Shown: positions 2,075 through 9,700 of the stretch, in pieces | Numbering within the stretch: the first letter of the stretch is position 1 | Layout of the letters: each line of letters opens with the position of its first letter | Origin: Thalia democratica | Taxonomy: Eukaryota | DNA length: 64,000 bases | Direction of reading: 5' to 3' | NCBI GenBank assembly: GCA_965202585.1 | Contig: OZ241827.1 | Span: forward strand, 72,044,001-72,108,000 | Program-made: the position numbers and the translations under genes | Notes under the pieces: generated by a model | The model's database searches: none | What the model was told of the DNA's origin: nothing | The model's input: the letters and a program-made list of their open reading frames with translations, nothing else

Positions 2075-3159
2075 TGTAAGTTTGAAAAATTCTTTATGAA
2101 AAAAAAACTCATTTATGAAAAAACAAACAATTAAGATACTTTATTACCAATAAAAAACAATAATAACTATAAACACACATATATAATATGCAGATTAATT
2201 ATAGTAAAATTAGCTAAAGTTCAACTATTTTTGACATAGCTTACATATGAAGTTATTACTTTTACAAAAGTTAAGGTACTGTAAAAATCTATTTCGAATA
2301 ACTCCGGTCTGTTATGTACAAAACTCTGCCGTATCTGGTCCGCTGAATATAAGTTGCCTAAATTTAAAAAAAATTATATAAACTTATATATGAAAGAGAA
2401 AAATTATACAAATTTATAATACTAATTATGAAAAGTATTGGTTTGTCACTTACAGAAGAAAGCTCATTTTTATGAAAACTTATGAAGTTTTATTGAACAA
2501 AAAGTTCACCTTTGTTAATTAGTCAATCATTTTTGTACTGTATATGGCAACACCGAAACGGAAACAAATGTTTGTAAACCTCCATTAAAATTTTCCAAAA
2601 CACTGATACTGTGAATTTGTTTATTCTCGATAGTTTACTTGTGTTCTTTACGGAACGTCTTATTTCAAGTTAAATTTGTTTGTTTCTTTAAGTAAAAACT
2701 AGTATAAAACAATACAACAATTTTTGCTCGCTTTAAGTGAACGGATTCCGATTCGTTTTAGGGCAAAGTATGTCGAAGCTAGTTATCTGCAGAATCCAGA
2801 TCTTTTTTTTTAACTTAGGGTTTGGCTGGAACCCAATATTAATGAAATACACCAAAACCCCTTGGATCCGGATAATAAAAACTGATAGATCACTAGCCAC
2901 AAGTCTTTATGTTGTAATAAAGTCTTAATGTTAATATCTTTTATGTAGTTTTAAAACAAACCAAAACTTTTCCTTCATTTTAAATTACATCATATATGTT
3001 TTCATAACTAAACACTGTTGTTAAGTGTTTAATAATTTAATAAGATACCAATTTTTTATATCCAATAAGTCTACTGAAAGTCTACTAAGAGTAAGCTCGA
3101 CAAGCTTAAAGTCTTTCAGCGATTGTGTTTTCATCAATGTTGTCTTTATTTATTCACAG

Positions 3160-3709
3160 ACTTGACGGAGTGCTGAAAGGAAAGGTCGATGTGCGTTACT
3201 ACACTCCGGGGCCTCGGATCAAAATGTACGACAGCTTCAAAATGCTCCTCTACTGCGAAAGACAAGTGGACTGGCGCCACTTCAACTTCAACAGCGGGAG
3301 GGTGGAAGCAGATTACTCTAGCGCCACCTACAGGGACTTCGGTGGCGACTCCGAGTGGCAGGAGGACGAGCTGGACGAGAGAAGGGAGAAAATAAACAGG
3401 CAGGCCGACAGCAGGTTGCGAAAGTTCACGAGGTTGGAAAGCGAAGGTCACAACTTGCGAACGGCGGAGTCCTCCTCCGTTTTCGAGCTGCTGTACTTCC
3501 AGCCCGATTTCGAGGGCAAGCTCCCCGGTTGCCCGGACTGGCCCGAAGATGACGTCATAGAGGAAAGCGTTTTGGAAGACAGTAACGAGGAAGATGATGC
3601 GTTTTTGGCAATAATAGCGAGCAGGAAACGACCCAACACTTCAGCTTCGGATCCTATTCCTTGCAAAGTTCCAAGGCATCAACCGAAAAACAAGCCGAAC
3701 AGGGGCACT
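3160..3709 (+). CDS. Exon encoding MBD-like domain 1 plus conserved extension and basic linker
   Basis: Acceptor tattcacag|, donor |gtaagc. Translation (R)LDGVLKGKVDVRYYTPGPRIKMYDSFKMLLYCERQVDWRHFNFNSGRV aligns with MBD2 [48 protein letters not shown]. The exon is visibly GC/CpG-rich against the AT-rich flanks. Confidence 0.8.
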
Positions 3710-6700
3710 GTAAGCAAGAATGTTAGTATTTATTTCTTTTTCTAATGTTTGTAGTATTCTAACTTAATTATAAGTTTAGATTATAAGTATAATTTTAATT
3801 TAATGAATTTGTTTAGAGCAAGTGTTTCATTTTCTTTTGCTAACTGATTATAACTACAGATAAAAAAGACGCCTAAAGAAAACCCAAGCTTTGTCTCCAG
3901 AGTACAAAATCTTGAAGGGTGGACTCGTCATATAACGTACAGGTTGGTAGTTTCAAAGTCTATAATATTTATATGTTTTATACGTCAAGTTTTTTAGTTA
4001 TAAAACTGTGTCAGGTCACTAGTAAAGTTTAATAAATAACGTAAATTTATTAAACTTGAAGTACAAAAAAGCTAAAAAATAGCCCTTAAATAGCTGTCTA
4101 ATGAAACAATAACCAAAACACTTTAGTTGCAAAGCTTTCGTCCTTTATTTAGAACATTTTCAATGCAAAAATACGGCTTATTCAAATAGAATATCATATG
4201 TTTAAACACTTTATTAACAACCAAAAATCTGTAACGATAAGAAGTATGAATACAAACACAAATATATGATATTAACAGTGTACACCAATATATAGTTAAC
4301 TGATCTATAGTTCAATTTTGCTACATTTCTGATTTTTTAATGTAGTTTAAGTTTAGTTTTATCTGAGCTTTAAAAAAAAAAATTCACAAATAAAAAAAAT
4401 TTAGATTAATTTACTTTTTAATTGTATTTTTATCAGTTACTGCTTCTTCAGAGTTTACTATACTATTAAAATTTATCATTCTGTCAAAAAACCTAAAAGG
4501 AATACTTAAATATTACAATTATGTAAAATATCCTTTGACTTAATTAACATTATAGAGGCAATTTAACAAACAAGGCTTTAAAGTTTAATGACAATGTTAT
4601 AAACAAATAAACACATTTCTATCAAAAGAGCTTAGAATTTTACAGTCAATTTTTATCAGGAACACTTGCGTATTTTACCTACGTAGTTGCTCAAGCTAAC
4701 GCTGGAAACTCAACAAATAGTTTTGATAAGGGTTAGCTGAATACAGTTTACCTGTTTGCTTAATAACAATTTTTTTGAATAGGTCATGTCTCTAATTTCG
4801 TTTTATATCTGTAGTATTAAAAAATTATATAAGTAGTTTCAGTGCGAAACGGTAAAAACAATTTTAACATTATACCAACAGGGTCAATGGCGAGAGCAAA
4901 GGAGCAACCGACGTGTATTACTACACCCCCTACCCAGAACTGAAGAGGTATGACTCCTTGAAGGAGATGATCTACTGCGAGCGGGGCGTCGAGTGGGAAA
5001 ACTTCGACTACAAGTCCGGAACGTTCACGCAAGATCGCGTCCACAGGACCTTTGAAAAGTTCGGTGGCGATGAAAATTGGCAAGATCCGGAAAAAGAAGC
5101 GAGAAAGAAGGTGATTGCGTTGCAAGCGAGGAAGCGGATCGAGAAGTTTGAGAAGAAGAGTCGAAAAGAAGGGTTCGTGTTCGACGAGAACAAAGCTACC
5201 GTTTGCGAGCTGTTGTGGCACACTCGGGGAAGATTTGAAGGAAAGCTTCCGGGAAGGCCAGACTTGCCTGGAGAAGGTTCGTCAGAAGCTTCTAGCCAAA
5301 GTGTTAGCGATGGCGATGAGGAGCTAAAAGAAGAGCTGATGTTAGATGAAAGTGATACAGAAACATCGGATAGCGAATGTGTTGCTCCTGAAAAAGAAGC
5401 AGAAGTTGTAGATGAAGTTAGTTTAAAAGGTTCGTTAGAAGCTTCTAGCGAAAGTTCTAGCGATGGCGATGAGGAGCTAAAAGAAGAGCTGATGTTAGAT
5501 GAAAGTGATACAGAAACATCGGATAGCGAATGTGTTGCTCCGGAGAAAGAAGCAGAAGTTGTAGATGAAATTAGTTTAAAAGGTTTCTTAGAAGCTTCTA
5601 GCAAAAGTGTTAGCGATGGCGATGAGGAGCTAAAAGAAGAGCTGATGTTAGATGAAAGTGATACAGAAACATCGGATAGCGAATGTGTTGCTCCTGAAAA
5701 AGAAGCAGAAGTTGTAGATGAAGTTAGTTTAAAAGGTTCGTTAGAAGCTTCTAGCGAAAGTTCTAGCGATGGCGATGAGGAGCTAAAAGAAGAGCTGATG
5801 TTAGATGAAAGTGATACAGAAACATCGGATAGCGAATGTGTTGCTCCGGAGAAAGAAGCAGAAGTTGTAGATGAAATTAGTTTAAAAGGTTTGTTAGAAG
5901 CTTCTAGCAAAAGTGTTAGCGATGGCGACGAGGAGCTAAAAGAAGAGCTGATGTTAGATGAAAGTGATACAGAAACATCGGATAGCGAATGTGTTGCTCC
6001 TGAAAAAGAAGCAGAAGTTGTAGATGAAATTAGTTTAAAAGGTTTGTTAGAAGCTTCTAGCGACTAACTTACAACTAATTTAAACAACTAATTTAAAATG
6101 TTATTGATTATTTCTTTAAAAAAATTAAACTTAACTTTTAACTATCTATAACCAATCAAAGACCTTTTCAAAGTGCTAATTGCATTCGAGAAGTTTTGAA
6201 ATCCTTTTTAAACCCTTTTTTTCTTCATCAAAAAAAACAATATTTAAAACAACTATCTATACAGAGCCTAATAACATGAACGAAACGGTCAAAACAAACA
6301 TGGATCATTCCGATTCTGATTCAGAACGTGAAGATTCCTTTGAACAAATGTCCTATTCAGATAACTTTTCATCTGAAGATGAAGAACTACAGATAGTCAG
6401 ACCACAGAGTAAACTTTTAGGTCAGTTTTATTTAAAAGTATATTGTAACCTTTATTGAAATGTCTATGTGTCAAATGAATTTTAAATGAGCTTTTATTAC
6501 TACACGTTTCTGTTTGATTTCAGAAGAATCAATTGAAAGTTTAATGTAGCCTGTGTAAACTTGTAAAGATTTTAACTGTTACAGTATATAAGATGAAATA
6601 AGTGTGCATGATAACAAACAATGCGCACATAGATTAAATTTTATTTTGTTTGACTGTTGTTTTATTTTATATTAGACTTATTTGAAAATTACTGATGTTT

Positions 6701-9700
6701 CATTTAAAAATTTGAACTTAACTTTTAATATTTTTAACCAATCCAAAACCTTTTCAAAGTGCTAAATACAGTCGAAACTGTTTGAATATTGTTTGAAAAT
6801 ACTTTTTTTTTCTTTATCAAAAATAAAACATTATCTATAACAACTATTCATATAGTGCCAAATCACATGAACGAAACGGTCAAAACAAACATGGATCAGT
6901 CCGATTCTGACTCAGAACCTGAAGATTCATTTGAACAAATGTCCGACTCAGATAACTATTCGTCTGAAGATGAAGAACAACAGATAGTCAAACCAGAGAC
7001 GAAAAATTTGAGTGAGTTTTCTTAGAAAATATTTCAACGATCTTCGTTTTATAATTTAAGCATTAAATAAATTTTGAATTAGCTTTTATTACTTTACGTT
7101 TCTGTCTGGTATCAGAAAATTTAATTTATAATTATACGTAGGCTGTGGAAACTTATCTAGCTTTTAGCTCTTACAATAAATAAGGGAAAAATAAATGTGT
7201 ACAAATTACAATGCGCACAGAGATTAAATGTTAACTTATTTGACAGTTGTTAAGTTTGTATACGTCTTATTTAACTTTTTAAAGGTTTTTTAATTAGAAT
7301 TAAAATTTAGCTTTTAATTATGTTAAACCAATCAAAGAACATTTCAAAGTGCCAAATGCAGTGTTAGTACGTAGTATATTTGAATATTGTTTAGAAACAC
7401 TATTTTTATCTATAGAAAAAACACTATTTAAAAAACATTATACCCTACAGTGCCGGAACAAGTCGAGGATGAAAGCGCGGCTGCAGTCCAGTTCACAACA
7501 GTGTTCGCGGAAAGGTACTGCAAAACCAACCCTGGTCCTAACTTTCTCGCAAAACCTTTCGCAGACGCCATTGAAGCAGCTTTCGGAGGGTCTCCTTTCG
7601 AACCAGGAAGGAGGAAAGGACTAGGTAAACTAATGTCAATATGTATATCACAACTATATTAACTCAATTCTTGTTTCAACTTTGAATCATCTCAGTAAAA
7701 ATATTCTGATTCAGTATATTTTTATTTACTAATCTGAGTTGAAATTAATTAAAAATTACATAATTTTTTATTTTTTTAAAGTTCAGTTAATGTTCACTAA
7801 AATATACCATAAAAAACCAGAATCTCCTTTAGTTACAATGCATTGGTACTTATATTAATCTGATAATATTTACTATATATATATAAATCTTACTTATTAC
7901 ATTCTTTAACACAGCACTCTACCTGCACCAAGAAGACAACATCGACTCTCATGTATTTTGCGAGCAGAAGCTGTGCCACCCCGCCCTAACCCGTCACCTC
8001 AACAAAAATTTTGTGTGCACAGCATTCGATATGACCACCCCACACAATAGAGAAAAGTTTGCTTTTAAATTATATTATATTCATTGCTTTTTATCGCTTA
8101 TTTTCAAAATATCGTTTGCTTTATTTCAGTTTTATTTGTTAAGCTGTTGAACATAACCGTGCGCCTGTCATTAATCACGAGTTTTTTGTTTCCGAATACT
8201 CGATTAAGATCTCGTTATTCAATTTCGATTTCATCTGAACAGGTTTCTAGCCATATGCAAACCTAAAGATTACCAAATTCACAAGGCAGTATTGGCAGTC
8301 ATAGAAAAAGAAGAATATCCTGTGCTACTTTTAATGAGCGGGGGAACAGGAACAACGAATCCTATAGGAAAAATTGAAAGTAATTATTTTACAGATTTTG
8401 TTTTTATTTATATCATAACAAACTAAAAACAACACCTCTTCAACATTAAAACAACAAAAAAGTGATTTTGTCATCATTAACTTGATAAAACATTAAAATC
8501 TTAAAATGACTTTTTGTTTTTCAGTATAAAGTCTCATAATTGAAACAAACTGTATAACTTTGGAATTTAACAATTTTTTTTTTAACTTGCTTGTTTGAAC
8601 TTAAACAACCATTTATAGTATGTGACTTAAAGCAAAGGGTCAGGCAACATTTAAAACTAGGGTTTCCCAAACTCGTTTTCATATACGCCAACTCGTCTAA
8701 AATAAAATAAAAACCTTTGATCACGAATTGACTGTTTTCGGCCGCTGATAGCCTGAACATCCCATATATGGTGTGATATCGCCCACTTTAAGAGACCATA
8801 ACAAAAAATTCTAAATTCTCCTTGTCCGATTCATTTTAATTTGTTGTGCAGGTGACAATACAAATGAAGAAATTGAAAATACTGTTGCAATGACAAAACT
8901 GTTTTTGGAGGAAGACCTCAAGCAAGAAAAAGAGTTTGAGGTTAGTTTTAAATAACTTATACGTAGAGCAGTGTTAGAAAATTTCGTTTACATGTGTTTA
9001 TCAATATTAGTATTAATCTTTGATTGTTTGAAAATTTAAGTCCTGCTATTTCCGATAAAATAAAAAATCTTGTAGTTTTAAAGTTATCTGTTTGAAGTTT
9101 TTTTTTTTAACAAGAATTTCATGTCTTTAAGGTCAAGAATGTTAAAACATTGATTTTTACTCAAAATGTTTTCAAACAAGACATTAAGAAATTGACTGCT
9201 CACACTTGAGATGTCAAACATCAGTAATAGCTTGCACCAGTTGAAACTAAAAATCTATCAATAATAATTTAACGAATTAACAAACAAAGTCCAAAAGATA
9301 TAACAACCAAACTATCAATAATTTTTGCAGGGGCCGAGAATGGTGAGACGCCAACAAGACAAAGAATACAACGAGTCGCTGGCAATCGATCAAGCGAAGG
9401 TCAGTTTAACTAGATTAGATAAAAATAAGAGCTATGTTTCGCTCTATTGCTGTGTTAGTTACTTTAACTTTCCGTAAGTTAAACAGTTTACTAAACTTAT
9501 GTGATTAACAAATAACCGAATCAACGCAATCTACAGATAAGTTTGTAGTATTTGAAACTTCTTTATAGGTTTGTAGTAAAAAGAACAAAAAAAAATCTAT
9601 AGCCACAGTTGAGTACTATTAAAATGTGTTATGCTCTCAAATACTAACCATTTTTGCAAAAAAATTAATAAAATTTGTGTTTTTTTACTGAAACATAGGC

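Follow-up and report, generated by a model that had tools for sequence, protein, structure and literature searches.

What becomes of a methyl-CpG-binding domain (MBD) when the second of its two arginine fingers is replaced by aspartate, and what does it mean that one gene carries this replacement in two tandem modules? The question is raised by a gene on the forward strand of a 64,000-nucleotide stretch of the Thalia democratica genome (assembly GCA_965202585.1, contig OZ241827.1, positions 72,044,001 to 72,108,000; the whole stretch is hereafter the window). MBD domains are the standard example of domains that read CpG methylation, and in members that do so the two arginine fingers are considered nearly inviolable. 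We approached the question through gene structure, homology, residue equivalence, family distribution and selection. Window positions 3160-6064 make up the central part of a gene that is intact and under selective constraint, with two tandem, strongly diverged MBD-fold modules and an acidic repeat tail after them. Both modules carry Asp at the position equivalent to MeCP2 R133, and, judging from their sequences, they have probably lost the canonical symmetric readout of methyl-CpG while still being functional binding modules.

By codon reading and family alignment, the R133 column reads Tyr-Asp-Ser in both modules (KMYDSF in domain 1, KRYDSL in domain 2) after a two-residue loop insertion, where the family consensus and MBD2 have Tyr/Phe-Arg-Ser; an earlier sequence-only reading of this DNA had given the same residues. 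The assignment of the Asp to R133 is firm, because the column sits between a nearly invariant Tyr and Ser and is Arg in 19 of 32 rows of the family alignment, because HMMER lays the family's 'kkyrS' on the 'KKFRS' of MBD2 after the two-residue insertion, and because the fold matches MBD structures. By the family column and the HMMER alignment alike, the second arginine finger is missing from both domains. The first finger (MeCP2 R111) is present in both, encoded by split AGG/AGA codons at exon junctions, and the column of its buttressing Asp (D121) is invariant in 28/28 family rows. The Y123 position, in a family column of nine Glu, seven Tyr, five Arg, four His, three Ile and two Phe, is Tyr in domain 2 and Arg in domain 1. 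It had also been proposed that domain 2 keeps the equivalents of R111, D121 and Y123 and that domain 1 has Arg at Y123, and this is what the sequence contains. The Arg at the Y123 column occurs in all five Asp-type domain 1 rows and in none elsewhere in the family. Positions of the contact residues and exons are collected in Table 1.

Table 1. Positions of contact residues and exons of the gene, numbered from the first nucleotide of the window.
Feature	Positions	Strand	Description
Domain 1 D-V-R	3188..3196	+	Asp (3188-3190) equivalent to MeCP2 D121; Arg (3194-3196) at the Y123 position
Domain 1 Asp, GAC	3230..3232	+	Column of MeCP2 R133 / MBD2 'KKFRS', inside K-M-Y-D-S
Domain 2 D-V-Y	4910..4918	+	Asp (4910-4912) equivalent to MeCP2 D121 and Tyr (4916-4918) to Y123; both retained
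Domain 2 Asp, GAC	4952..4954	+	R133 column, inside K-R-Y-D-S
Exon A	3160..3709	+	Final base of the split codon for the first-finger Arg of domain 1, then the C-terminal two thirds of this MBD-like domain, its ~80-residue helical extension and an acidic/basic linker
Exon B	3860..3942	+	End of linker and N-terminal beta-hairpin of domain 2 (..NLEGWTRHITY), then AG, the first two bases of the split Arg-finger codon
Exon C, first part	4882..5270	+	Last base of the Arg-finger codon, remainder of MBD-like domain 2, ~80-residue extension (long helix, ..FEGKLPGRPDLP)
Exon C, remainder	5271..6067	+	Five 153-bp acidic Ser/Asp/Glu-rich repeats and stop TAA (6065-6067), the 3' end of the gene

Read from the window sequence, three exons (A, B and C, the last spanning 4882-6064 without the stop) join in frame on the forward strand. 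Exon A starts where its counterparts start in paralogues and in orthologues from Tara Oceans, and has its donor GT at 3710; its domain 1 product reads R|LDGVLKGKVDVRYYTPGPRIKMYDSF, and the helical extension that follows terminates in FEGKLPGCPDWP. Exon B is kept in both duplicates of the gene on contig C5 and is similar to the hairpin exons of L009 and Tara L033. Since exon B ends in AG and exon C starts with G, the split first-finger codon of domain 2 (3941-3942 plus 4882) reads AGG, or Arg, and the domain across this junction reads ..GWTRHITYR|VNGESKGATDVYYYTPYPELKRYDSL. For domain 1, the corresponding GW..R hairpin exon was looked for in the window and is absent from it. A query from a Tara contig located it about 5 kb further upstream, at window -1974..-1894 (L023:8026-8106), where it encodes NRLRKKNPTLLNRIDYPEGWTREISYR followed by AG; domain 1 is therefore complete, with its own first Arg finger. 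On this point the sequence-only reading needs correction. Each module is thus made of a GW-x-R beta-hairpin on a small exon, a D-V-x-Y-Y ... Y-[R/D]-S stretch and a helix on a main exon, and a family-specific helical extension of ~80 residues. The two main-exon products are 41% identical across ~133 residues, and the duplicated unit comprises the MBD-like core and the extension ending FEGKLPG-PD-P.

The residue comparison presupposes that the modules are MBDs, and we weighed this against the possibility that the motifs are a chance resemblance and the arginine-finger comparison meaningless. The Pfam model of the domain (PF01429) gave no match to the exons in the window at E values up to 10, its gathering threshold of 21 bits was reached by none of the family members tested (18 bits at best, for P0002, and no match for the spliced P0011), and a six-frame scan of the genome with PF01429 did not report this locus. 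In contrast, a profile (A3) of 25 family sequences searched against 177,635 PDB sequences returned nine MBD2/MBD3 sequences at E values of 1.3e-4 to 5e-3 and nothing else below 0.06. The HMMER alignments were in register over the G-K-x-D-V-x-Y strand, the R/S motif, the F-D-F-x-x-G stretch and the helix, apart from the two-residue insertion in the hairpin. Structure models gave the same answer. P0011, a family member from a metatranscriptome that is spliced as predicted, was modelled with AlphaFold2 (AF2) at a predicted local distance difference test score (pLDDT) of 68, with strands at 23-29, 32-38 and 50-55 and a helix at 67-73 (strand-strand-strand-helix). Its first 11 Foldseek matches were all MBD2/MBD3 chains, followed by MBD1, MeCP2, MBD4 and AtMBD5/6 (probability 0.96-0.97, template modelling score by target 0.5-0.57, best E 0.035). 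The independent AF2 model of domain 2 (pLDDT 79, built without the first hairpin) had MBD2/MBD3 as five of its six Foldseek matches, at a root-mean-square deviation of 2.5 A, and these were its only specific matches; MBD clusters were also among the language-model look-alikes. A chance resemblance would be favored by the subthreshold Pfam scores, by Foldseek E values of 0.035 or weaker and by the E value of only 0.06 in an hhalign comparison with the genome's own MBD2/3-like gene. Given that the sole significant PDB matches and the best matches of both models are MBDs, we consider it very unlikely, and the MBD fold of the modules can be taken as established with moderate confidence from profile and model comparisons. 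For the ~80-residue extension, predicted to be a long helix plus short helices, no fold was recognized (VIA-align wide Z ≤2.4; AFDB clusters E ≥1.1).

The closest known counterpart in both sequence and fold is the MBD of MBD2/MBD3 (PF01429; PDB 6cnp, 6c1a, 6cc8), with which the modules share the beta-hairpin, strand and helix topology, the GW-x-R hairpin, the first Arg finger, the D-V-x-Y strand, the [F/Y]-R-S motif before the helix and the F-D-[FY]-x-x-G end. They differ by the two-residue hairpin insertion before the second finger, by the family-specific helical extension, by scoring below the Pfam threshold and by the lack of a NuRD-type coiled coil; in the window gene, the second finger is Asp in both modules and domain 1 has Arg for Tyr. 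MBD folds with altered contact residues are known to persist under selection as protein or chromatin targeting modules, as in mammalian MBD3, which carries K30H/Y34F, and MBD5/MBD6, which bind the PR-DUB deubiquitinase complex; these proteins have lost methyl-CpG selectivity. In them, however, other residues are changed, and we know of none whose second finger is Asp. The gene described here has the change in both of its tandem modules and comes from an expanded orphan family that also includes fusions to a USP deubiquitinase domain. A further lead, and only a lead, is the likeness to the TAM domain of BAZ2A/TIP5 and BAZ2B, an MBD-like core plus C-terminal helices that binds RNA/DNA and keeps the second Arg; no TAM structure was matched by sequence or fold in our PDB profile and fold searches.

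In canonical MBDs, R111 and R133 each hydrogen-bond one guanine of methyl-CpG, R133 additionally packs on a methyl group, D121 forms a salt bridge with R111 and Y123 contributes to recognition (PMC8811898). A carboxylate at the R133 position would be unable to make the guanine contacts and would present like charge toward the DNA backbone or bases. As it cannot replace the contacts of R133, the canonical two-arginine readout of symmetric methyl-CpG would be lost. We infer from this that the modules most likely serve as non-canonical targeting modules, and what they bind in place of symmetric methyl-CpG could be a protein surface, a half-site or some other feature of nucleic acid. The Arg that domain 1 has at Y123 may be a relocated finger buttressed by the Asp, much as D121 buttresses R111 in canonical MBDs. 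The Y123 and R133 positions should be cross-strand neighbors in the hairpin, and this expectation, together with the exclusive co-occurrence of the two residues, makes an Asp-buttressed, relocated Arg a reasonable idea, although both the pairing and its geometry on the DNA face would have to be as we suppose. Several observations weigh against our reading of two MBD-fold modules that have lost the canonical readout. The core of domain 1 is still basic (net charge +4) and could bind DNA, the co-occurrence of Arg-123 and Asp-133 may stem from a single evolutionary event, and the Foldseek E values and the failure of Pfam to recognize the domain, given above, bear on the fold itself. The core of domain 2 is slightly acidic (net charge -1), and the extensions are oppositely charged to their cores.

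To whom these modules belong is indicated by their distribution. This genome (0.8 Gb, AT-rich) has at least 20 modules of the family, with at least 22 matches to the module in the genome search, and a search of 1.84 billion representative proteins returned 18 matches only. All matches whose source was checked trace to Tara Oceans, either to its marine metagenomes or to a metatranscriptome; the contigs that carry them are short and AT-rich and share the exon boundaries seen here. By these searches, the family is an orphan that is lineage-restricted and expanded in an animal of marine-plankton type. What follows the modules at the C-terminus varies between members: a USP/UCH deubiquitinase domain (P0008, L015), a conserved domain of ~90 residues (L004, P0001, P0006, P0009) or, in the window gene, the acidic 153-bp repeats. 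The deubiquitinase fusions form a cluster of at least four genes on the same contig, ~6 Mb upstream of the window (L015:1408-2763, L011, L012 and L013; G000:C2:65.67-65.97 Mb), in which the module is joined to the USP/UCH domain in one open frame, as also in Tara P0008 (Pfam UCH, E 3e-17). The ~90-residue domain (...VGxN...C..LCDP...W.F...A......K..R..FF..LIA...FK...), found in L004:1480-2853 (G000:C6:35.306 Mb) and in the three Tara proteins, has no Pfam match and is common to several family members, the window gene not being one of them. L004 and L005 retain Asp, Tyr and Arg at the contact positions.

Two whole-gene segmental duplicates of the window gene lie on another chromosome-scale contig (C5), with ~90% identity in non-coding DNA and similarity that stops at window position 6063. 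The three segmental copies, of which C2 carries one and C5 the other two, align from window -3117..6063 to G000:C5:13.711-13.721 Mb and 13.641-13.651 Mb (L024, L025) at ~78-93% nucleotide identity including introns. Compared with the C5b copy, the window has ~2.3 kb extra at 675-2954, inside the first long intron. Tara relatives of domain 1 (L021:642-1016, L033:1228-1859) have an extra intron within the extension, after ..QADNR[FL], that this genome does not have.

Within this genome, Asp at the R133 column is found only in the three copies of the window gene, in both domains of each; the other paralogues have Arg (L004, L005, L009, L010, L012-14, L016, L018), Ile (L011, L015) or Lys (L019). 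Outside this genome, Asp was found only in two Tara relatives of domain 1, P0034 (six contigs from six assemblies) and P0036, which read DVRYY...KMYDSF with the codon GAC. A lack of conservation of the Asp in orthologues had been named beforehand as what would speak against its significance, and for domain 1 these two relatives show the opposite. Tara relatives that are just as close to domain 1 are of Arg type (P0002/24/25/26, with CGC in L021) or of His type (P0035, which uses CAC and is the same as P0024 in all other respects). No Arg-type domain 1 was found in this genome, and homologue searches with the 394-residue exon product and with domain 2 alone found no domain 2 orthologue outside it. 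With Arg as the family consensus at this position, Asp would be the derived state, and CGC-CAC-GAC is a path of single steps, the first of which is a CpG transition.

In phylogenetic trees, the Tara domain 1 relatives and domain 1 of the window gene fall into one clade (support of 98/93 or better). A clade of Asp-type domain 1 rows received 90/89 with the trait column included; with this column removed, the approximately unbiased (AU) test of its monophyly gave p 0.32, and the trees thus do not resolve whether these rows are monophyletic. A single exclusive clade of all Asp rows, from domains 1 and 2, was rejected (AU p 0.004). Therefore, Asp would have been gained either at least twice or once with a reversal to Arg. 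Recent gene conversion between the two Asp codons was considered and is unlikely, because the nucleotides flanking them differ (AAAATGTACGACAGC versus AAGAGGTATGACTCC). The odds that two lineages both replace Arg by one and the same residue are about 1 in 20, and set against chance the shared Asp is suggestive only; the homology of the modules does exceed chance.

To estimate constraint, the ratio of nonsynonymous to synonymous divergence (dN/dS) was calculated among the three genomic copies, giving 0.17-0.25 for module 1 and 0.15-0.24 for module 2, with frames open in both modules of all copies. Compared with Tara Asp types, module 1 has dN 0.13 and a saturated dS (~1.9), a ratio of 0.07, with the Asp retained; part of this dS may come from a change in exon G+C in this genome. 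Purifying selection acts on the modules. From the low ratios and the retention of Asp against Tara, it follows that the gene is maintained and that the Asp persisted through long divergence. On the 32-row tree the R133 column, with states Arg, Asp, His, Ile, Lys and Thr, changes seven times, the exact median of 124 columns, and the Y123 column eight times; the D121 column, Y15, P18, W40, G48 and W75 change not at all. Across the family alignment, the two positions that touch methyl-CpG in canonical MBDs are not specially protected.

These results bear on three explanations of the double Asp. That it marks a decaying duplicate or pseudogene could be imagined from the gene being one of three recent segmental copies with ~90% identity in non-coding flanks, but open frames in all copies and the dN/dS values of 0.15-0.25 in both modules and 0.07 among Asp-type orthologues make this hardly credible, and the claim of the sequence-only reading that the change is not decay is borne out. 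Neutral toggling, in which the fold is used via another surface, the R133 and Y123 equivalents are unconstrained, and the double Asp reflects coincidence or shared ancestry, is a serious though still doubtful possibility. It accounts for the median rate of change at R133 and the similar rate at Y123 beside columns with no change, for Ile, Lys or Thr at the R133 site in paralogues, and for the two Tara proteins P0024 and P0035 that are identical except for Arg/His. It sits less well with Arg still being the clear majority, with the nearly invariant flanking Tyr and Ser, and with the persistence of Asp, by the same codon, in lineages saturated at synonymous sites.

Positive selection of Arg-to-Asp in both modules for a new specificity, be it for asymmetric or hemi-methylated sites, for a different base mark, for RNA or for a protein partner, seems to us rather unlikely. 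The same radical change in two modules only 41% identical speaks for it, as does the rejection of a single clade of Asp rows, which implies at least two events of two nucleotide changes each along CGC-CAC-GAC. So do the retention of Asp under strong constraint across saturated synonymous divergence and its coupling with Arg at the Y123 column in domain 1. However, the R133 column is no better conserved than the family median and holds six residues, close relatives retain Arg or His, what is counted as two events could just as well be a single gain and a reversal, and a codon-model test of positive selection is beyond the reach of the present sample size. With constraint on the column no higher than the median, selection for a new specificity is possible and no more. 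The sequence-only reading had suggested just such a specificity, and its interpretation is supported in part: Tara relatives just as close carry Arg or His, the Y123 column is equally variable, and no domain 2 orthologue was found outside this genome.

The setting of the gene was also examined for methylation machinery and neighboring genes. The window has 28% G+C and its exons are sharply richer: module exons (3160-3709, 4882-5290) have 51-54% G+C and a CpG observed/expected ratio of 0.97-1.18, introns have 25-29% G+C and a CpG ratio of about 0.67, and the non-coding parts of the window have a CpG ratio of 0.67-0.70. The Tara orthologue contigs L021, L033, L034, L039 and L040 have 28-30% G+C overall, so that exon composition may have changed in this genome. 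The methylation genes comprise DNMT1-type genes (BAH plus DNA_methylase), of which three stand in tandem and a further copy is on a small contig, and a DNMT3-like open reading frame (ORF). The tandem ORFs (G000:C1:49,968,705-49,997,951; L027-L029) encode 873-878 residues with BAH and a complete C5-methyltransferase domain in one open frame, and the extra copy is on C467 (L030); so many copies of a maintenance methyltransferase are unusual in an animal. The sole Pfam-detectable MBD gene of the genome is of MBD2/3 type (L026:1414-2208; G000:C9, ~8,202,114-8,202,908; 24.9 bits), a single exon whose product has a coiled coil at the C-terminus. In an alignment to MBD2 made by eye, all four methyl-CpG-contact residues appear to have been lost, with Phe, Gln, Arg and Tyr at R111, D121, Y123 and R133.

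Downstream of the window gene lies a FAF1/UBX-like gene, which is outside the duplicated unit. It has tandem ATG-bearing first exons at 6277-6420 and 6886-7025, ~75% identical (MNETVKTNMD.SDSDSE..), which suggests either alternative first exons or a local duplication. A fusion of the two genes was rejected as the default model because of the in-frame TAA at 6065, the end of the C5 duplicates at 6063 and the first exons of the UBX-like gene with their own ATG; rare splicing from donors in the repeats into this gene is possible.

Taken jointly, these observations would allow a far-reaching reading that we regard as a long shot. The expanded plankton MBD-fold family would be diversifying DNA-mark readers, in an animal with multi-copy DNMT1, a DNMT3-like gene and an MBD2/3 orthologue apparently without methyl-CpG contacts. 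The re-wired second finger of the window gene (in domain 1 an Arg moved to Y123 and buttressed by Asp, in domain 2 Asp alone) would then give half-site, hemi-methylated or non-CpG specificity, and the Arg/His/Asp series in wild relatives would be a natural specificity switch.

The gene belongs to an orphan, plankton-restricted family of MBD-fold modules that provides natural variants at the exact contact positions, while the scaffold around them is conserved and under purifying selection. Should one of the modules bind DNA, the family would be a ready-made series for studying the re-tuning of the MBD fold; should none bind it, the family would be a further clear case of fold reuse, both as a tandem pair and in fusions to deubiquitinase domains. 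Either way, an unannotated gene family is added to an animal lineage with little functional annotation.

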